NCBI RefSeq assembly: GCF_021869535.1 | Contig: NW_026262593.1 | Span: forward strand, 54,002,001-54,066,000 | DNA length: 64,000 bases | DNA from: Mytilus californianus | Taxonomy: Eukaryota | Reading direction: 5' to 3' | Part shown: positions 8,059 through 58,401 of the stretch, piece after piece | Layout of the letters: every line of letters starts with the position of its first letter | How positions within the stretch are numbered: position 1 is the stretch's first letter | Notes under the pieces: generated by a model | Seen by the model: the letters and a program-made list of their open reading frames with translations, nothing else | Database searches by the model: none | Told to the model about the DNA's origin: nothing | Translations under genes and position numbers: made by a program

Positions 8059-8945
8059 TCACTCTTCAATAAATGGTTTGGAATGTTCACGCATCAAAGA
8101 AACGATACCATTGTATCCTAGTTTTCTGGTAATTTATTTTGGTGGTAAAAGAGATTCACCAACACTGGCACGTATATAGTAATCTGCTCCTTCCGACAGT
8201 AACATTATGACTGTATCTATATTATCTTAAAAACAATCTATAAAAAAAACTCCAGAATTTCCTCTCTTATTAATGTATGCCTTATTGTCTAGATTCAGCT
8301 TTACTATATCTACATGATTCTTCTCACTAGCAATAAACAGGGGAGACGTTTCCTTATCTGTACACTGGTTAACGTCTGCCTTGTTGTCAAGCAACAATTT
8401 TTCTACACCTGCATGATTCTCCAGACGAGCAATAAAGGGTAGATTTTCCAGTATCTATACACTTGTTTATGTCTACATTGTTATCAAGTAACAGCTTTGC
8501 TATATCTACACAATTCTCCTGAAAAGCCATGAACAGAAGTAATATTTTACTATTTCCACACTTACTAATGGCTGCCGTGTTTGCAAGTAATATCTGTACT
8601 ATAACTTTTTGATTCTCCTTACAAGCATTAAACAAGGAAGATATTCCATCATTGTTACACTTAATACTTTCAGTCTGATTGTAAAGTCACAACCCTACAA
8701 GATACACATAATTCATATCACAAGCCGTGAAAAAGGGAGACGTTTTTTAGTCTGTACATTAATCAATGTCTACCGTCTACCTTATGGTCAAGTAACAGTT
8801 TTACCACATCGACATGATTCTGCTGACGAGCAACACACAGGGGAAATTCTCAAACATCTGTACAGTGGTTAACGTCTGCCTTGTTGTAAAGCAACAGTTT
8901 TACTACATCTGCATGATTCTGCAGACAAGCAATAAACAGTAGTAT
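8059..8945 (-). pseudogene. Exon 4, part d: decayed ankyrin tail (~8 units) and probable ancestral C-terminus
   Basis: Repeat-like peptides switch frames with several stops; the terminal segment reads ...DNIDTVIMLLSEGADYYIRASVGESLLPPK*ITRKLGYNGIVSLMREHSKPFIEE* (TGA 8059-8061). Confidence 0.65.
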
Positions 8946-10524
8946 CTGTACACTTATCAATGTCTACATTGTTATCTAGTAACAGCTTTACTATATCTAT
9001 ATAATTCTCTTGACAAGCAATAAACAGGGGAGATGTTCCTTCATCGTTACACTTGTTAACGTCTGCCTTGTTGTCAAGTAACAGTTTTACTATATCTAAA
9101 TTATCCTGTTGACAAGCAATAAACAGGGGAGATAATCCGTCATCTGTACACTTATCAATGTCTACATTGTTATCTAGTAACAGCCTTACTATATCTACAT
9201 AGTTCTCTTGACAAGCCATAAACAGGGGAGATGTTCCTTCATCGTTACACTTGTTAATGTCTGCTTTGTTGTCAAGTAACAACTTTACTTTATCTACATA
9301 ATCATGTTGACATGCAATATACAGGGGAGATGATCCAGTATATCTACACTTATTAATGTCTGCTTTGTTGTCAAGTAACAGCTTTACTGTATTTACATGA
9401 TTCTCCAGACAAGCGATAAACATGGGAGATTCTCCATCCTCTCTGCACACATTAATGTCTGCTTTATTGGTAAGTAACAACTTTACTATATCAACATCAC
9501 CCTTCTGACAAGCAATATACAGGGGAGATGTTCCATTATTTTTACACGTATTAATGTCTGCTTTCTTGTCGAGCAACAGTTTTATGACATCTGCATGATT
9601 CTGTTGACAAGCAATAAACAGGGGAGATACTCCGTCATCTGTACACTTATCAATGTCTACATTGTTATCTAGTAACATCCTTACTATATCTACATAATTC
9701 TCCTGACAAGCAATACACAGGGGAGATGTTCCTTCATTGTTACACTTGTTAATGTCTGCTTTGTTGTCAAGTAACAACTTTACTATGTCTACATCACCCT
9801 TCAAACAAGCAATATACAGGAGAGATGTTCCATTATTTTTAAACGTATTAATGTCTGCCTTCTTGTCAAGTAACAGCTTTACTATATCAAAATGTTCCAT
9901 CTGACAAGCAACATACAGGAGAGATGTGCCATCAATCCTACACTTATTTATATCTGCTTTGTTGTCAAGTAACAACTTTACTATATTTATATCACCCTTC
10001 TGACAAGCGATATACAGTGGAGATGTTCCATTAATTTTACACGTATTAATTTCTACACTGTTGTCCAGTAACATCTTCACTACATTAAGATGTTCCATCT
10101 GACAGGCTATTAACAGGGGAGATGTTCCATCGATCATACTCTTATTAGTGTCTGCCTTGTAATCAAGTAGCAGCTTTACTATACCTATATGATTATTCTG
10201 ACAAGCAACATACAAGGGAAACATTGCATAACCATTATAATTATTAATGTCTGCCTTATTTTCAAGTAACAGCTGGACTATAGCTTCATGATTCTCTTGA
10301 CAAGCAATATCTAGAGGAAGGCTGTTCCATTTTGTACACTTGTTAGTGTCTGCATTGTTTATAAGTAACAGTTTTACAATATCTACATGTTTGTTCTTAC
10401 AAGCAATATATAGGGAAGATATACCCATGTTTATGTCTGCCTTGTTTTTAAGTAACAGTTTTACTATATCTATATGATTCTTCTGACAAGCAATAAACAG
10501 AGGAGAAATGCCCATCTTGTACAC
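8869..10524 (-). CDS. Exon 4, part c: ankyrin repeat array (~16 units) after a 1-nt frameshift
   Basis: ACA-AGATGGGC-ATT has 8 nt where the repeat consensus has 9; the repeats continue in the new frame until a further deletion frameshift at ~8940. Confidence 0.9.
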   Translation of the reverse strand: MYKMGISPLFIACQKNHIDIVKLLLKNKADINMGISSLYIACKNKHVDIVKLLLINNADTNKCTKWNSLPLDIACQENHEAIVQLLLENKADINNYNGYAMFPLYVACQNNHIGIVKLLLDYKADTNKSMIDGTSPLLIACQMEHLNVVKMLLDNSVEINTCKINGTSPLYIACQKGDINIVKLLLDNKADINKCRIDGTSLLYVACQMEHFDIVKLLLDKKADINTFKNNGTSLLYIACLKGDVDIVKLLLDNKADINKCNNEGTSPLCIACQENYVDIVRMLLDNNVDIDKCTDDGVSPLFIACQQNHADVIKLLLDKKADINTCKNNGTSPLYIACQKGDVDIVKLLLTNKADINVCREDGESPMFIACLENHVNTVKLLLDNKADINKCRYTGSSPLYIACQHDYVDKVKLLLDNKADINKCNDEGTSPLFMACQENYVDIVRLLLDNNVDIDKCTDDGLSPLFIACQQDNLDIVKLLLDNKADVNKCNDEGTSPLFIACQENYIDIVKLLLDNNVDIDKCTDTTVYCLSAESCRCSKTVALQQGRR

Positions 10525-13500
10525 TTATCAATGTCTGCTTTGTTTTCAAGTAACAGTTTCACTATATACACATGGTTATTCTGACAAGCAGTTAACAAGG
10601 GAGAGTTTTCAAAATAATTACTATTATTAATGTCTGCCTTGTAGTCAAGTAACAGTTTTACTATATCTACATGATTCTTCTGACAAGCAATGAATAATGG
10701 AGATATACCATTATATATACACTTATCAATGTCTACCATATTGTCAAGTAAAATCTGTACAATAGCTTTATGATTCTCCTGAGAGGCAATATAAAGGGGA
10801 GATTTTCCATCATATGTCAAGTTATTAATGTCTGCCGTGTTGTTCAGTAACATTTTAACAATCGCTCCATGATTTTTCTTACACGCAATAAACAGGGCAG
10901 ATTTGCCACCAAAATGACGAATATTAATGTTTGCCTTATTGTTTAGTAACAGTTGTACTACCTCTACATGATTCATCTGACAAGCAATAAATAAAGGAGA
11001 TATTCTATAATATTTACACTTATTAATGTCTGCATTGTTGTGAAGTAACAGCTGTACAATAGCTTCATGATTATTTTCACACGCAATAAACAGGGGAGAT
11101 ACTCCATCATATTTACACTTATTAATGTCTGCTTTGTTATCAAGTAAAAGTTTAACTATATTTACATGATTCTCCTTGCAAGCAATAAATAATGGAGATA
11201 TTCCATTATATTTACACTTATTAATGTCTGCATTGTTATCCAGTAACAGTTTTACTATATCTAAAAGATTTTTCTTACAAGCCATTAACAGGGGAGATAT
11301 TCCATCATATTTACACTGATCAATGTCTGCCTTGTTGTCAAGTAATAACTGTACCATTGTTCTATGATTCTCTTGACAAGCAACATATAGGGGAGATATT
11401 CCATCATATTTACACTTATTTATGTCTTCCTTGTTGTCCAGTAACAGCTTTACTTTATCGATTTGATTCTCCCGACAAGCACCAAACAATGGATATGGTT
11501 CATCGTCTGTCCTCTTATCGATTTTTGCCTTGTGGTCGAGTAACAATTTCACTATAGGTACATGATTATTCTTACTAGCAATACACATGGGAGATGTGCC
11601 ATCATCTGTACATTTATTAATGTCTGCCTCATTGTCTAATAACAGCTTTACTATATCTACATGATTCGTCTGACAAGCAATAAACAAGGGAGATTTTCCA
11701 TCATCTAAACACTTATTCATATCTGCCTTGTTGTCAAGTAACAACTTTACTACATGTTCCCAATTTTCAAGACATGCAATAAATAGGGGAGATATTTCAT
11801 CATATTTACACTTATTAATGTTCGCCTTGTTGTCAAGTAATAGCGTTAATATATTTATATGATTATTCTGACAGACGATAAACAGGGGTGATGTTCCATC
11901 ATCTGTACATTTATTAACGTCGGCCTTGTTGTCAAGTAACATCTTCACTATATCTATATTGTTCATCAGACAAGCAATATACAGAGGAGATATTCCGTCT
12001 GCATTACACTGATTGATGACTGCACTGTTGTGAAGTAACAGCCTAACTATATCTACATAATTATTCTGACAAGCAATATATAGGGGAGAGCTGCAGTCAT
12101 ATCTACACTTTTTAATGTCTACTTTGTTGTCAAGTAACAGCTTTACTATATCTACATGATTATACTGACAAGCAACATATAGGGGAGAGCTGTAGTCATA
12201 TCTACACTTGTTAATGTCTACTTTGTTGTCAAGTAACAGCTTCACTATATCTACATGATTATTCTGACAAGCAACATACAAGGGAGAGGTGTTATCAAGT
12301 GAACACTGATTTACGTCTGCCTTGTTATCAAGTAACAGCTGTACTATATCTGAAAGATTATTCTGACAAGCAATAAACAGGGCAAATTTTTTATCATCTG
12401 TGCACTGATTAACGCATGCCTTGCTGTCAAGTAACATATTTACTACGATTACATGATTATTCTGACAAGCAGTATATAGGGGATATGTGCAGTCATATCT
12501 ACACTTGTTAATGTCTACTTTGTTGTCAAGTAACAGCTTTACTATATCTACATGATTATTCTGACAAGCAACATACAGGGGAGAGGTGTTATCAAGTGTA
12601 CACCGGTTTACGTCTGCCTTGTGGTCAAGTAACATTTTTACTATTCCTATATGATCCTTCTGACAAGCTACATACAGAGGAGATGCGCCTCTATCTGTAC
12701 ACTTATTAATGTCTGCCTTGCTGTTTAGTAACAACATTATTATATCTTGATACCCTTCCTCACAAGCAATAAACAGAGGAGAGGTGCCGTCATATCTACA
12801 CTTGTTAATATCTACATTGTTGTCAAGTAACAGCTTAACTATATCTAAGTGATTTTTCTGACAAGCAAAAAACAGAGGAGATGTTTTATCATTTGTACAC
12901 TTATTAATGTCTGCATTTTTATCAAGCAAAACATTTATTATATCTTGATACCCTTCCTGACAAGCAATAAACAGAGGAGATGTGCCATCATATCGACACT
13001 TGTTAATGTCTGCATTGTTATCAAGTAACAGCTTTACCATATCTACATGATTATACTGACAACTATTAAAAAGGGGGGATGTACCATCGATTGTACTTTT
13101 ATTAATGGCTGCCTTTTTGTTAAGCAACAGCTTTACTATATCTACATGATTCCTGTGACAAGCAATAAAGAGGGGAAATATTCCATTATATTTACACCTA
13201 TTAATGGCTGCCTTTTTTTCAAGCAACATCTTTACTATATCTACATGATTCCTGTCACACGCAATAAATAGAGGAGATATCCCATCATAATTACACATAT
13301 TAATGTCTGCCTTTTTGTCTAGTAACAGCTTTACTATTTCTACATGATTCCTCTGACAAGAAATAAGCATGGGAGATATTCCGTCATCTTTACACTTATT
13401 GATGTCTGCCTTATTGTCAAGTAACAGCTTCACTATATCTACATGATTCTCCTGACAAGCAATGAACAAGGACGATGTTCCATCGTTCGCACACTTATTA

Positions 13501-23374: not shown

Positions 23375-24899
23375 TACTGAGTGCCAATGAAAACGCAACA
23401 CTTGTAAATTTCAAATATTTAAAAAAAATATAAATATTTTTTTTAAATGATTACCTATATCGGTTTGCAAATGAACTTTCAGACTTCTTTCGACAACTTT
23501 ACGCTTGAATGATTTTAGAAAAAAAGTTACGTGCTTGGTTACAGAATAGGGAGGAGAGTCGAGTGTACCGCTATTTTACGCACGAGTGATTTTCTCATGT
23601 TTGTTTTTGAAAGCCTTGCTTAAGAATTGAAATTTCCCATCCTTTTTTGTAAGCCACTGCAATAAATTAAGACGCAGATGCCAAGACTTTCAGACTAACA
23701 GAGATATGAAGTTTGGAGCATGGTGCAAGGAGGCATTTCAAGTCGTGAAATTGCACGTTGAATGCAGTGTTCGGCCTCAACAATTACCAGACTCATCCAA
23801 AGATTCAAACAATTTGGGTCTTTGAATGATAGGCCACGTCCCGGAAGACAGGGAGCAACTACTGCCCAACAGGGCCGATACATTCGTCTTCAGCACCTGC
23901 GAGATCGTTTCCGTACGGCTGTCCAATCAACACGAGAGACTGTCGGCGTCCATAGGAGACAAATTTGAGCAAACACGGTAAGACGCCGTTTGCGCAGCAG
24001 TGGATTAAGGACACGGCGGCCTTTCCGTGGCAACATGCTGACAGCAGTACGACGCCAAAATCGCCTTAGATGGACACAACAGCGTCAGAGATGGTCACAC
24101 AGGCAATGGACAACTGTCTTATGGACGGACGAATCAAGATTCCATCTTCGCCGTAGTGATGGACGAACTCGTGTGTGGAGAAGAAGAGGAGAACGCTATG
24201 CAGATTCATGTATCCAAGAGACAGATCGTTGGGGTGGTGGTAGTGTCATGGTATGAGGAGGATTATCGTTCAACCATAAAACTCCACTTATCATTATCAA
24301 TGGCAATTTAAACGCCAAACGCTACATTGTTGAAGTTTTACGGCCGACCGTTATACCGTTTATGACTTGGCATCAAGATGTTAATCATTTTCAACAAGAT
24401 AACGCTCGTGCACACTCCGCACGACTCACAACTGCGTTCATCAATAACAACCATGTTCAGAAATTACCATGGCCAGCCTTTTCGCCGGATTTGAGTCCAA
24501 TTGAACACTTATGGGATCAAATTGGACAAACCGTAAGACGACGACAGCCACCACAATTTACGCTGCGCCAACTTGAAATTGCATTGCGGGAAGAATGGAC
24601 AAACATTCCACAGCACCGTATCCGACGTCTGCTCAGGTCAATGCCACGTCGTTGTAGAGATTGCGTTGCAGCACGCGGTGGACACATTCGTTATTGAGAC
24701 TGTGAGTAGTGAATTGTAGCGTTGTGTTGCATGAACGCATTGCATTCGAATCGTGGTAATTTGAAAATTTTTGTTTGACTTTTATCTTTAGATAAACCCA
24801 TTATCTGTCAGTAACAATTACTGTAAAGAAAATATTATTTTGTATAAAAATGATATTTTTAAAAAAAACAAAGTGTTGCATTTTTATTGGCAATCAGTA
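23375..24899 (+). mobile_element. Tc1-family DNA transposon (DD34E), full length but inactivated, in intron 1
   Basis: 29-bp TIRs with 26/29 match (TACTGAGTGCCAATGAAAACGCAACACTT) flanked by TA. Transposase frame 23678-24697 (339 codons) with WTDESRF, QQDNARAH, SPDLSPIEHLW and D-34-E spacing; four in-frame stops. Confidence 0.95.
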
Positions 24900-24974
24900 T
24901 ATTACAGACACAAGAAGCGCTATATTGTGTCTGTTTGTTTTGCTCACATATTGTTGTTAATATAATGGAATTTT

Positions 24975-25200
24975 AGGGCGACTGGCACACAAGTGAGAAA
25001 TTTAGCTATCTATAAAATCAGGTTTAATTCGCCATTTCGTCATAAGAAAATGTCTGTACCAATTCAGGAAAGAACAGTTGTTTTTCATTCGTTTGGTGTG
25101 TTTGAGTTGTTGATTTTACCATTTTATAACGGCCATTCCGTTTTGGATTTCCCTTGCAATTCGGTATTTTTGTTATGCTACTTTTGTTCTACTGTAGGTT
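24975..25200 (+). repeat. Family A repeat with degenerate twister
   Basis: Homologous to 41151-41350; T1 strand is AAT and T2 is GC/TT, so both pseudoknots are broken. Confidence 0.65.
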
Positions 25201-26769
25201 CTTCTAGGGTTAAAATTGAGCTAGAAAGAGCTATGACGTTTGATGATTCTAATATTAAACATATGGCCTGTTTACCAATCGACAAGATAAAAACAAATGT
25301 AGACCTTATGTTTGTTTAAGTGCAAAACGTTGTTTCAATTCCAATTTCTGCAGAAAATACTGAAAACATAGTCCATATTCTTGCCAGCTTTTACAAAAAG
25401 GTATCCTAATTCGAAGAAAATTTGATAGCTTATGCTGTAGTCATACCCACAAAACGTAGCAACATGGCAACAATTATAGTATATTCATGTACTTCTATGA
25501 AAAAATGTTTGGAGTTGACTTTCATGATAATTTTTTGGTCTTATCGAAAAGCAATAAAGATTTATTTACTGTTTTAAAGACCATACATGTATTTGAAAAT
25601 TTTAGAACGCATACCGGTTTATTTCAAGGGACCTATTGTCATCAGAGATCCTTCAAGATCTTACATAAAGAGATTAAACTAAAAACTGTGTATTCAATAC
25701 ACAGTATTTGTCTTGTACACGTATTTTATCGTGTGAAGGGTATGCGAGATGTAGGAATCATCTTAGTCACTAAGCAATTTCTGAAGGAAGACGGCGATGA
25801 AAATGATGTCTGAACAATAATACAAATGTATTACATGGCGTGTGGATATCACTCAGACTGATGCGGAATGTTTACACAAAGGGATAAACAATGTGAAGCA
25901 CGGTGTTCTTAAAATGTTGTGTCCTTTACATGTTAATTTTAAATTGCAGCAACTCTTTCTGAAGGGGTCCATACATGTAATAGACTGCTCGTGTCAAAAT
26001 TCATACCCTTACAATCTCAATGTTCATAACAAACAAATATACACTAACCAAAAGTACTTGATTTATACCATTGTATTCAGTTTCCTTGAGAAACATTTGA
26101 CGCCGGTATATAATTTTAAAAACAGAAACAAAATTATCTTCTTTTCTTTTGATTAAACGGTAAAGTTCAGAAATGTACACGTAATGTAAAGAATATCAAT
26201 TGAAACCAATTTTCTGTTTCGTCTCTGCCTTATTCTTGTTGGGCATTTGGTGATTACATTTTTTTTTATTCAAAACGACTTGAAAAAAAATTTCTATTGT
26301 TTACTCTTTCATTCAAGAGCAGCTATTTCTTGTTCTTTTTTTCCAATTCAGGCATTATTTTCTGACTTTTAATATACCCTCGTGAATTTGTTAAACATTA
26401 ATGACAATCTCAACTACTTCAAATTTAAAAAAAAAAATGCACATTTTGTCGATTCTTCGACCAGGCAAAAAATAAGTTAAAACATTTCTTAAACCGAAAG
26501 ATCCTAGCTTAATCTGCAGGTAGGGTGTTTCATTAAAGTGGAACATGTGTTAGCTATGTCACTTCACTTATTGACAAAAAAGGTCAGTTGAAAACAAGAT
26601 TTTAAAACACAAAGAGAATTAAATTTATCATTTTTTATTTCTTACTACATTAAGCTCAAAAGCATCAGATACAAGTTATAACAACATAGATAGCCCTGTC
26701 TTCTATCAAAGGGACAAAAAGAAACGATTTAGCTTCCAAATTATGAGTTTCCGGTTCATTGTATTAACA

Positions 26770-27270
26770 TTCAAGCGGCGCCCTGCTAATAGATTATATA
26801 TCTCCAAGTCAATACAATACTCAAAGGCTTGCGTTTACTGTAACAATTTCCATGACAATGGTTTGATGCTTGTAAATGAACTATTAAACCAAGAGCTCCG
26901 AGTGATTGAAATCATCCCATAGACAATTTTAGGAACGCCTTCACGAGAGGTTTGCCCGTTATGGAATATATGTTTCTAACGGTTATGTTCCAATTGTCGA
27001 ATCGTTTATCCTCTTTTCTTTACCTAGAATGTGACCTACCAAATCTGACTAATCACCGAGTTTATACTAACCTGATCAACACGACGAGTGACATATGCGG
27101 AGCAGGATGTGCTTTCCCTTTGTTAGCACCTGGTTTGATGTACGGTTTTTGGTAGGGTTCGTGTTGCACAGTGCTTAGTTTTTTATGTTGTGTTTCGGTT
27201 TTACTCATGGCATAGTCAGTTTGTATTCGACATATGATTTTGAATATCCTATTGGTATATTTCTCCTCTC
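26770..27270 (+). mobile_element. 5'-truncated PLE-type retroelement, family D
   Basis: Decayed RT C-terminus (GAPANRLYISKSIQYSKAC...ELLNQ) followed by a 3' region that is the reverse complement of the repeat at 44400-44620. Confidence 0.6.
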
Positions 27271-27464
27271 TTAATTATATTAACTGAATTATGTTGTGTG
27301 TACTTTATGCTTACATACACTTTCTTTTCATATATTTAGCATGTTCAGTTAGACTACTTTCTCATTGACAGACAATTATTACAAGTTTTTCAACTTATCA
27401 AAGAACATTACAAAAGGTGCAAACAAGATGTTTAATTAACCAGATTTATAGAACTAATACGTAC

Positions 27465-27693
27465 CACTACGGGGACACAGTAGGTTCCATTGAGCTGCAT
27501 TAATGACACGCTTCTTTTTCAAGTCAAGAAGTTTTCCCATGTCCTGTTTAATTGAGGCTTCTAAGCAAGAAGGGTGGAACTCATTATCAAATAATACACG
27601 CACAGCCCTTGGAGAAATGCCAGTTAGTAACAAATTCATTCTCAAATAGTTCTCTTCTTCTTCAGAAACATGTGATATATCAGCAGTTGCCAT
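27465..27693 (-). CDS. Coding exon 1: N-terminal part of DZIP3-like HEPN domain
   Basis: MATADISHVSEEEENYLRMNLLLTGISPRAVRVLFDNEFHPSCL...AAQWNLLCPRS; donor G|GTACGT at 27465/27464, phase 1. Possible upstream acceptor CTTGTAG at 27711-27717. Confidence 0.85.
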
Positions 27694-28418
27694 TTTTTCT
27701 TAATCTTAATCTACAAGATGTTCCTTAAATCTAATGTTCAGGTTTGTAACGATGCTGCTGCCTAAAAGTTACATAATTACCATTGGTTTTTTTCTATAAT
27801 GCTGTTTGTAAATTCAATATACTTTGGTGATTTCATTTGTCTCGCTTAATACCAGTAGACAGGACTGTTAACTGGTACTCAATGACTGTTTTCCTTATTG
27901 CCTAATAATTCGAATATTCTTGGGAGTTCTAGTTCTTTTTACCATTAATCAATATAACCTCCTTTACCAGCATGAACTGAAAATGCAGAAAAAAAGGTAA
28001 TGATAAAAAATAAATAATAAGAAGTCTCCTTACACATCATGCCCTCCCTCACCATCCTTTTGTCCATGTTCAGGTAACCATGAACACTATTTTTCATATA
28101 ACTTGAAATGTTCAACTCACAATGAAGATAAGTGCTTAGACTCAAGTTTATATGACCAATCAAACTTCATAGTATAAACTACATTAACCTTAGCATTAAT
28201 CACTAGTTTTCAGTCATCACATTTCTCAGTAAACCGTGTAATCGGGTTAAAAACCATTATTTAGCATATAATTTAACTAGGTCACATCATAATAAACATA
28301 TTTTCAAAGTTTCAAGTTGATGTGATCTTAATGGTAAATACCTATGCCAAAACATTACCTGATATAGGACTGACCAGAGAAAAGACGGACGGATCACTAG
28401 TAAATGAATTTTAATTTA

Positions 28419-56165: not shown

Positions 56166-56999
56166 GAATGACTTAAAGGAGATGCCAAAGATACGAAAGT
56201 CGAAAACGAACTGACAATGCCAAGGCATAAAACGCAAAACGATCATAAACCAAACAACTGTATACAAAATACAACATGTTTTGATTTAAATTTCTTCACG
56301 GTAAGCAAAAAAGCTTAAGAGGAAGTTCAATCCAATGATTATTGTGTCAACTTGGATATTATATACTTCAAATGCAGGCACATAAAACGTTGCTAGACAG
56401 AAATGGGTTACACACAAATAAAATCATCTATTGCCATAAAAAGTAGTTATCAAATACCCTTCTTGTTTAATTCCAAATTAACAAGCATCTGTAATATCTT
56501 TTATTCCAAGATTTATGAAATAGAACTGATAAATGTAGTCAAAATACTTTGAATTATACTGTTAAAGGACATCATCCTCTAGTATATAGCGAACAGTGAT
56601 GTCAAGGGATAATGCTAGTTTTTTGTTCTATTTTCTTCTTTTTGAGAAGCTCCTGTATGATGTCTGCTAAAACTGAAAAGTCAAATCGGTGAGTAGAGGA
56701 ACACAGTGTGATTCTATTTGAATGCTAACTGCCCGTTGTAAAACACATTCAATGATGCAAACTTAAAATTTTTTTATTGAAAATGGACATAGGTATATGA
56801 TTAATTACTACAGCTCTAGTCTCTCAAAATGGCCAGGGAATTTGTCACAATATCCGCAGAGGGTTAAGAGAGTAGGAAAAGTCAGGAAAAAACATCATGC
56901 ACATAAAATAGAAAATCGACATAAATCCATTGTTTGCTTTGATAAAATACAAAACCATAGAGACCCTGACAATAAGAACGATAGATTGTGTTTTAGATA

Positions 57000-58401
57000 T
57001 GTAGGACTCGGAGGTGTGATGGGGACGCTGAAGTGCGATGGTCTACGCCGAAGTGCAATGCTCCTTTCGCTGAAGTGTGATGCTCCTTTCGCTGAAGTGC
57101 GATGGTTTTGCATGACTTTTGGATATTGTGACGTTTTTATATACAACGTTATTAAACTAAATGGATTCACAGCCAGGAGGATAAGATTTGTAGATGAAGG
57201 ATTCATGCGTACAAAGGAAACAGAATGAACCGAACGATTCAAGTCCCGAACAGTTTTGAGCATTAGAGGTGGAGGTTACAAAAATATGTAAAACTAAGTC
57301 AGACAGCAAACCATGGGGAACAAGGCGGCTAAAAGATAATCTTGGTCTGCAGATGGACTAACCAGTGTTCGGAAACATGTATAATGTATGCCGCAAACGT
57401 TTTGTACGACAAATACAATGTCTTGATCCTAATATTAATTTGTCTTCTCTTCAAGTATACATCACATGATTTTGTGTGGACAACTTAATAATAAATTTAA
57501 ATTAATTATTAGCAATGTTTTCGTAATATCAAGTAGCGGTAATTTTGTTTTATTCTTGAGATGAATCCTGCTTTGTAAAAAAAAAAGCAATCTTAGTAAT
57601 TTCATTGTGTTTACAGTATTAATCTTCTGTAATGGGTTAGGCCAAAATAAACCCGAATGGTCCCAACTTGGTGTACTTTTCAATTGCTGCTGCTCAACGG
57701 AGAAGCAGCTAATTCTCAAGCTTTTGACAGAACATGCATCACGTCTCATATGAGTCAAGCATAAATGTACTTGGTTGCTTTTATTTCTTAAAAACTGTTG
57801 ATATCATATAAATGGATGAATGAGTGTTTTGAGCAATTTCTTAGCTATGACATGACAAGAACAAGTTACTAGTATAATTGATAAAATTAGATGGATCCTA
57901 CTTAGTTTGTACTATAGACCGCCGCGCTGAACCCGTTTTTTTATCGCACTTGAACACTCAATATAAAGACATGTCCTCCCAACTCGAATCTATTATTCTT
58001 AATCTGAGCCATCCAGTCTATTTGTCAGTCCAGTATCGGACTCCATACTGTTGTGTGTAAAGCGAATAATTAGGAAATTAAAATTTAAAGTTCTTGGTTT
58101 GACCCGACCAGAAATAAAACCCGATCTTCCAAATGCGAGGCTAGCACGCTAACCACTACACCGCCACATTAAACGGGGTTTTAACTTCAGACCATCACAT
58201 TTAGCTAGTATACACAACGTCACAGTTAGACCATCGCACTTCAGCGAACCCACCAACGCACTTCGGCGTATCTAACAACAAGTTAGCGTCACAATGTCAC
58301 CATCGCACTTCAGCGTGGTAACCAACGCACTTCAGCGTGGACTAGCACACTTCAGCGTGACTATCGCGGTTCTGAGTACCATCGCGGTTCAGAGTCCTAC
58401 A
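57000..58401. mobile_element. Non-autonomous DNA transposon with TGT...ACA ends (Ginger-like) and subterminal repeat arrays
   Basis: Perfect 10-bp TIR TGTAGGACTC/GAGTCCTACA; GATA on both flanks (56996-56999, 58402-58405); inverted arrays of CGCTGAAGTGCGATGG at 57026-57103 and 58231-58390; no transposase ORF. Confidence 0.75.
58089..58168 (-). mobile_element. tRNA-derived SINE head fragment nested in the Ginger-like element
   Basis: Minus strand GGCGGTGTAGTGGTTAGCGTGCTAGCCTCG...GGTCGGGTCAAACC: A-box-like start with a degenerate B-box region. Confidence 0.5.

Follow-up and report, generated by a model that had tools for sequence, protein, structure and literature searches.

HEPN domains of the DZIP3/hRUL138 family occur in animals as fusions to ankyrin, NACHT, CARD, Death and LRR domains, and the family is expanded in oyster and in Nematostella (Anantharaman et al. 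2013, Table 1, PMC3710099). In the pearl oyster Pinctada fucata, more than 50 genes encode an N-terminal DZIP3-like HEPN domain, a central NACHT domain and C-terminal repeats; the Rx4H motif is present in 194 of 202 pearl-oyster genes, the genes vary in copy number and in presence or absence between haplotypes, and a role in degrading the RNA of viruses or transposons has been proposed for them (Takeuchi et al. 2022, PMC9646362). Lineage-specific expansions of bivalves have also been discussed with regard to their HEPN, STAND and ankyrin modules (Kaur et al. 2021, PMC8195603). The combination of a HEPN domain with an NTPase and repeats is already a published theme in bivalves (Anantharaman 2013; Takeuchi 2022). 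The work described here concerns a 64-kb stretch of the Mytilus californianus genome (the window; contig NW_026262593.1, positions 54,002,001 to 54,066,000), in which positions 27693 to 8059 of the minus strand hold a gene with this type of layout. It is very probably a recently inactivated copy, whether pseudogene or null allele, of a mussel NLR-like HEPN-STAND-ankyrin receptor gene. The intact ancestor would have encoded a protein of approximately 2,700 aa, consisting of a DZIP3-type HEPN domain, a STAND NTPase of the nSTAND3 family and about 59–66 ankyrin repeats.

Alignment of Mytilus proteins to the locus by tblastn, combined with inspection of splice sites, gave a four-exon gene on the minus strand, with the HEPN domain spread over three small exons and a giant fourth exon starting at 15943 (Table 1). 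All three introns are of the GT-AG type with pyrimidine-rich acceptors, and their phases of 1, 0 and 1 are mutually compatible. The exon model is collinear, in four blocks, with P0003, P0008, P0015, P0025 and other Mytilus proteins in which a single chain includes both HEPN and nSTAND3 domains; these homologues cross the junction between exons 3 and 4 exactly, with VQ following directly upon STVPWNIR. Exon 1 aligned with residues 1–70 of Mytilus HEPN-nSTAND3 proteins at 61–70% identity and exon 3 with residues 66–103 of P0003 and P0015 at 66–72% identity; in P0008 and P0025, the part collinear with exon 3 is the end of the HEPN domain. A preliminary description of the locus had joined exons 1–3 to exon 4, and this linkage is upheld by the introns, their phases and the collinear single-chain proteins. 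The 3’ limit of the gene at 8059 is approximate: ankyrin-like units extend to about 8250, and a TAA at 8136–8134 closes the last open piece.

Domain searches were run on separate exons and stop-to-stop frames, and exons were joined only to locate the stop. The arrangement of HEPN, STAND NTPase and ankyrin repeats given in the preliminary description was recovered through Pfam matches to HEPN_DZIP3, nSTAND3 and Ank, and the motifs quoted there (RNQLAH, ASSGVGKT and FVIDD, the last within LFVIDD) are present on the minus strand. HEPN_DZIP3 (PF18738) matched the region of exon 1 (27457–27699) with 19 bits over profile positions 2–37, and matched the region of exon 2 alone (20148–20429) with 85.4 bits over profile positions 36–114, above the cut-off of 27, which places the domain in this family. 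The RNxxxH motif, in the context ARIKxxRNxxxH, is retained in 28 of the 31 HEPN-bearing homologues, which argues that it is under selection across the family. The HEPN domain of the family is predicted to be an RNase effector. Prediction of a HEPN homodimer from two copies of residues 1–165 of P0025 returned a score of 0.25 against a mark of 0.32 and counts as evidence neither way.

The stop-to-stop frame that holds the first part of exon 4 (14766–15977) matched nSTAND3 (PF20720) at 89.4 bits, against a cut-off of 27.2, across profile positions 1–153 of 155. NACHT reached 20.4 bits, below its cut-off of 26.7 and in the P-loop region only, and no C-terminal leucine-rich repeats were found with Pfam, where only ankyrin families matched. 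‘NLR-like’ is a description of the logic of the protein, not of membership among NLRs sensu stricto. Within an alignment of 50 sequences, the invariant or nearly invariant residues of the family include Gly54, Gly56 and Lys57 of the P-loop, Asp99 of Walker B, Arg138 after strand 4 and His310 in the winged helix; by comparison with NB-ARC proteins, Arg138 we take to be sensor 1, and His310-Asp311 an MHD-like motif. An AlphaFold2 model of the STAND module built on the same family alignment had a predicted local distance difference test score (pLDDT) of 91.5 and a predicted template modelling score (pTM) of 0.86. The model predicts a P-loop α/β core, a helical bundle and a β-hairpin winged helix, that is, the succession of nucleotide-binding domain (NBD), helical domain (HD) and winged-helix domain (WHD). 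The best Foldseek matches in the Protein Data Bank, all with a probability of 1.00, were NOD2, NLRP2/3/14, Apaf-1, Dark, CED-4, the plant resistosomes NRC2, ZAR1, Roq1 and WRR4A, MalT, SAMD9 and the EfAvs5 SIR2-STAND protein, while VIA ranked Dark, CED-4 and RPP1 first (Z 13–14, 260–293 aligned residues, model residues 5–357). A sequence search of solved structures with the homologue P0025 returned nothing relevant. PADLOC gave a weak match in the P-loop region to the candidate system PDC-S73 (E = 7.6e-12) and to mad8, and no match to the HEPN domain.

Ankyrin families matched the remainder of exon 4 (8230–14762) with E values down to 1e-300 (Ank_2, E = 9.5e-300), which places the array among ankyrin repeats. 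The units were mapped with a repeat-unit hidden Markov model built from the array itself, and Tandem Repeats Finder reported a period of 99 and 56.5 copies. Units 1–43 lie in one frame and units 44–59 in a second, followed by the decayed units 60–66. The units hardly vary at the framework positions (LL, SPL, AC), and variation between repeats, measured as entropy, peaks at unit positions 16, 17, 20, 29, 32 and 33. Positions 16, 17, 20 and 29 we take to be the canonical target-binding positions that are randomised in designed ankyrin repeat proteins. This pattern fits a binding surface that was diversified repeat by repeat. Two units differ in length while keeping the frame: unit 2 is a half unit (14575–14428, units 2–3), 51 nt instead of 99 from unit 3 and with 16 residues missing relative to the paralogues, and unit 44 is short by 12 nt. 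These in-frame losses suggest that in-frame changes of repeat length predate the frameshifting ones.

The preliminary description had treated the locus as an intact, working gene, and this part of it was not sustained. The frame read over the spliced exons is broken by two TAA codons, four frameshifts and extra stops in the 3’ tail. Mapped on P0008 and P0025, the TAA in exon 3 removes approximately the last 10 positions of the Pfam HEPN profile, so that no complete HEPN domain lies in the open frame; it also lies 37–39 nt upstream of the last exon junction. At the column of the second TAA, nine paralogues from the same genome have a sense codon, and their single open frame runs on into ankyrin repeats. 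The frameshifts are apparent from unit spacings of 98, 88, 106 and 97 nt, as against 99, in units 43, 59, 61 and 64 respectively. Further stops on the minus strand, at 8871–8869 (in the shifted frame), 8852–8850, 8761–8759, 8749–8747, 8689–8687 and 8229–8227, fall in units 60–62 and after unit 66, and unit scores drop to 45–59 bits in units 59 and 61–63, compared with about 70–98 upstream. Between the lesions, frames of 404, 1,430 and 551 aa stay open. With a stop in exon 3 ahead of the NTPase, another ahead of the ankyrin array and four frameshifts within the array, the tripartite protein cannot be produced from the assembled copy.

Ways in which the copy could nevertheless be read through were considered. 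Skipping of exon 3, or use of an internal acceptor, was ruled out as a bypass of the exon 3 stop because the 97 nt of the exon shift the frame, and exon 4 then reads TGC AAA TGA. Stop readthrough or recoding was rejected, both stops being TAA and standing where paralogues have ordinary sense codons. No intact haplotig was found in the same assembly, in which the best other locus is 68% identical.

The lesions are unevenly spread along the gene. Upstream of unit 59, two stops and one frameshift occur in about 7.5 kb, whereas the last eight units hold three frameshifts and five or more stops and have lower unit scores. The 7,548 coding nt up to unit 59 offer 345 opportunities for a substitution to create a stop, and the two stops observed correspond to approximately 0.6% neutral divergence if equal substitution rates are assumed. 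Of the 61 STAND positions at which at least 90% of 49 relatives agree, this copy keeps 60, and intact relatives deviate at a similar number; the sole deviating position is a change from Gly to Glu just after Walker B. From these counts we infer that the upstream decay is young and that the 3’ tail decayed much earlier. The order of events would then have had two steps. An old frameshift in unit 59 would have shortened the array, with translation ending at 8871–8869, and the gene would have kept working with about 59 repeats while the tail repeats decayed. The two TAA codons and the loss of 1 nt in unit 43 would have come only recently.

Table 1. Positions of exons, motifs, repeat array and lesions of the HEPN-STAND-ankyrin gene, numbered from the first letter of the window
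Feature	Position	Strand	Description
Exon 1	27465–27693	-	229 nt; ATG at 27693–27691; N-terminal helix region of HEPN_DZIP3; donor GTACGT
Exon 2	20172–20401	-	230 nt; HEPN_DZIP3 core with catalytic-type motif; acceptor ...TTTTCAG, donor GTGAAT
R-x4-H motif RNQLAH	20232–20249	-	Context ARIKYFRNQLAH; N after R, as usual for HEPN
Exon 3	17086–17182	-	97 nt; HEPN end and short linker (…STVPWNIR); donor GTAAGG
Lesion 1, in-frame TAA	17123–17125	-	Exon 3, after codon 172; sense codon in homologues
Exon 4, first part	14766–15943	-	STAND NTPase module (NBD, helical domain, winged helix); frame open
Walker A ASSGVGKT	15827–15804	-	Motif present
Walker B LFVIDD	15695–15678	-	Motif present
Sensor-1-like ACR	15575–15564	-	Within STAND module
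Winged-helix (WHD) ‘HD’ motif TVHDK	15056–15042	-	Within STAND module
Lesion 2, in-frame TAA	14763–14765	-	Exon 4 linker between STAND module and ankyrin array
Ankyrin array	8250–14650	-	66 units of 99 nt (33 aa) each, consensus IVKLLLDNKADINKCTDDGTSPLFIACQENHVD; unit map by nhmmer
Lesion 3, 1-nt loss in unit 43	10505–10540	-	Unit spacing 98 versus 99; frame shifts
Decayed 3’ tail, units 59–66	8134–8994	-	-11 nt in unit 59, +7 nt in unit 61, -2 nt in unit 64

The copy belongs to a large family. Of 593 candidates from a six-frame search of the 1.65-Gb genome, at least 105 were scored as nSTAND3 loci. Most of these loci run on into open frames of 700–2,500 aa; in approximately 20 the NTPase module contains stops, and about a dozen are cut short. 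At least 150 exon matches to PF18738 lie above the cut-off, a count that covers the 150 scored of 637 candidates, and most of them span profile positions 37–114, which points to the same exon 2 structure. These numbers agree with the expanded bivalve family envisaged in the preliminary description. At about 20 of the 30 best STAND loci, a HEPN exon lies 4–25 kb upstream on the same strand. Judged by this mixture of open, stopped and truncated copies, the family is one that evolves by birth and death. The best paralogue in the same genome is 68–69% identical to the copy studied here and no relative in the databases searched exceeds 76%, which indicates a distinct lineage without a recent duplicate. 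A protein word search returned 112 relatives, almost all from M. galloprovincialis, M. edulis, M. trossulus, M. californianus and M. coruscus, and their names are domain-based or ‘uncharacterized’ only; automatic annotation has therefore reached the family in five Mytilus species, in line with the annotation in mussel genomes mentioned in the preliminary description. Outside the window but on the same chromosome, nSTAND3 loci lie 120–250 kb away at G000:C13:53754082-53755269 (+; 66% identity) and G000:C13:53882970-53884109 (-; 62% identity), and two TAA codons break the second of them. At C13:70.76-70.92 Mb, at least six copies are more tightly clustered, among them the closest paralogues (65–69%).

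For intact members of the family, a route from ligand sensing through oligomerisation to RNase activity can be inferred from the architecture. The ankyrin solenoid would hold the NTPase in a closed, ADP-bound state, from which binding of a pathogen-derived or danger ligand would release it. Nucleotide exchange would then drive oligomerisation and bring HEPN domains together, and the paired R-x4-H sites would form an active RNase that degrades viral RNA, host RNA or both. This RNase-effector logic, also put forward in the preliminary description, agrees with what has been hypothesised in print for bivalve DZIP3-HEPN/NTPase proteins (PMC3710099; PMC9646362). The mechanism is plausible at the level of the family; it can concern this copy only if other individuals have intact alleles.

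Several points weigh against the locus being an inactivated receptor gene. Some of the lesions may be assembly errors, or may be heterozygous in the sequenced animal, and the long open frames with their undamaged motifs are also compatible with a gene still functional in other haplotypes. As to the receptor function, no bench test of any family member was found in the literature, and RNase activity, oligomerisation and ligand binding are predicted features. Carried furthest, the first of these points would have the gene intact and functional in the animal, with all stops and frameshifts being errors in the assembly consensus. The very long frames between lesions and the conservation retained in the STAND module would be expected of such a gene, and tandem 99-nt repeats are hard to assemble. 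However, two of the three upstream lesions are substitutions to TAA rather than indels and lie outside the repeat array, and the 3’ tail combines many independent lesions with lower repeat scores, as in real decay. Approximately 30% of the other family loci carry stops or truncations and most do not, which speaks against systematic error. We consider a wholly intact gene very improbable. It is scarcely credible that exons 1–3 and exon 4 are two transcription units, a HEPN gene beside a STAND-ankyrin gene. The lengths of intron 1 (7 kb) and intron 2 (3 kb), the transposon debris in both, and the absence of the HEPN part from many database models of the family would suit this arrangement, but both domains stand in one chain in P0003, P0008, P0015, P0025 and others, with the junction crossed exactly and the phases fitting, and the HEPN exon recurs upstream and on the same strand at most of the best STAND loci.

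A different role for the remaining frames was also considered, in which the pieces act separately as a free RNase, a decoy or a regulator of intact paralogues. The products would be a 172-aa HEPN-only protein from exons 1–3, a 391-aa NTPase-only protein from an internal ATG at 15938, or both. Up to its stop in exon 3, the frame opened by the ATG takes in the complete catalytic motif and falls short of the HEPN profile by only about the last 10 positions, and the 391-aa product (P0001) was predicted by a gene caller. In vertebrates, nonsense-mediated decay follows a 50-nt rule, and the short distance from the exon 3 stop to the last junction could spare the mRNA. In the pearl oyster, HEPN-only genes of the DZIP3 type are abundant (PMC9646362). 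Against this, the C-terminal helix of the HEPN domain is clipped, neither an upstream exon nor a promoter backs the internal ATG, and a 3’ untranslated region of roughly 9 kb would normally destabilise the mRNA. The pattern of lesions is the one expected for random recent nonsense mutations, and separately acting pieces are improbable. Inactivation of a receptor gene is the reading best in accord with these observations. A narrower version of it, possible but on balance unlikely, is that the animal behind the reference has a recent null allele of a receptor that other individuals still possess in intact form, and that the remaining HEPN-only frame of 172 codons might in addition yield a free or dominant-negative RNase module. 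The null allele is suggested because the divergence estimated from the upstream lesions is within the allelic range of mussels. Were it true, the locus would represent a natural knock-out, or functional polymorphism, of a HEPN-STAND-ankyrin receptor.

Mobile-element remains were observed within the introns. In intron 1, a short open reading frame at 24362–24697 (+) matched the DDE_3 transposase family (PF13358) at 32 bits over profile positions 86–138 and is, by this match, a fragment of a Tc1/mariner-type DNA transposon. It sits in a slightly GC-richer stretch at 22–26 kb, and the plus-strand open reading frames adjoining it (23990–26156) gave no Pfam match. In intron 2, a run of short minus-strand open frames at 18674–19534 (for example …VIVPVDKASNNIVFVCK…) looks like a decayed mobile-element reading frame, although no Pfam match was obtained for these frames at E ≤ 0.01. 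Elsewhere in the window, the sole other open reading frames of at least 120 aa overlap on opposite strands at 56797–57263, with 143 aa on the plus strand and 122 aa on the minus strand. The 143-aa frame had no Pfam match, and both are probably due to chance or derived from a repeat.

Set against known systems, the family weighs more than this copy, and the locus by itself opens no new question. It adds a clean example of birth and death, with a two-step decay that left catalytic and switch motifs intact and with an exact map of exons and lesions. The nearest described counterparts are the bivalve DZIP3-HEPN/NACHT genes, which share the N-terminal DZIP3-type HEPN domain with Rx4H (N after R), the central STAND-class NTPase and the C-terminal repeats, as well as a massive, clustered, lineage-specific expansion with many broken or variable copies and a proposed role in RNA-directed innate defence. 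In contrast to those genes, the NTPase here is nSTAND3 (89 bits) rather than NACHT (20 bits, below cut-off), the repeats form a 66-unit ankyrin array in place of LRR, TPR or WD40 repeats, and the copy is inactivated. Also close are the Mytilus proteins annotated automatically as ‘Novel STAND NTPase 3 domain-containing protein’ or ‘DZIP3-like HEPN domain-containing protein’ (for example M. trossulus LOC134692528 and M. galloprovincialis LOC143066864), which are of the same family and have the same exon junctions and a STAND identity of 55–76%; none in the databases searched is above 76% to the mussel copy described here (closest, P0002).

Among better characterised proteins, Apaf-1, Dark, CED-4 and the plant NLR resistosomes provided the best structural matches to the NBD-HD-WHD module (Z 13–14), and Walker A and B are present as in those proteins. 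The Arg after strand 4 and the ‘HD’ motif of the winged helix, as read from the alignment, also presumably correspond to those of NB-ARC proteins. Identity is only 10–14%, and these proteins differ in their effectors (CARD, coiled-coil or TIR) and in their sensors (WD40 or LRR). RNase L is an animal antiviral protein in which an ankyrin sensor is combined with an RNase of the HEPN superfamily that is activated by ligand-induced dimerisation. The joining of an ankyrin sensor to a HEPN-superfamily domain is common to both, but RNase L has the opposite order of domains, a pseudokinase instead of a STAND NTPase as its switch, 9 ankyrin repeats and a HEPN domain of the KEN family. The RNase L type is listed in the KEN row of Table 1 of PMC3710099. 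For bacterial Avs5, a SIR2-STAND-TPR protein, the NTPase falls in Pfam nSTAND3 (preprint, bioRxiv 10.1101/2025.07.08.663546), the same family as the module described here, and the EfAvs5 structure 9jap was among the best matches to the STAND model (Foldseek TMq 0.47). Both follow the logic of effector, NTPase and helical repeats, yet Avs5 has a SIR2 effector that depletes NAD+, a sensor of TPR, Sel1 or PPR repeats and a prokaryotic single open reading frame, and identity is approximately 14%. With these differences, the mussel family may be regarded as an animal counterpart of the bacterial Avs-type STAND defence proteins, equipped with a predicted RNase head and distributed over hundreds of loci in a sessile filter feeder.

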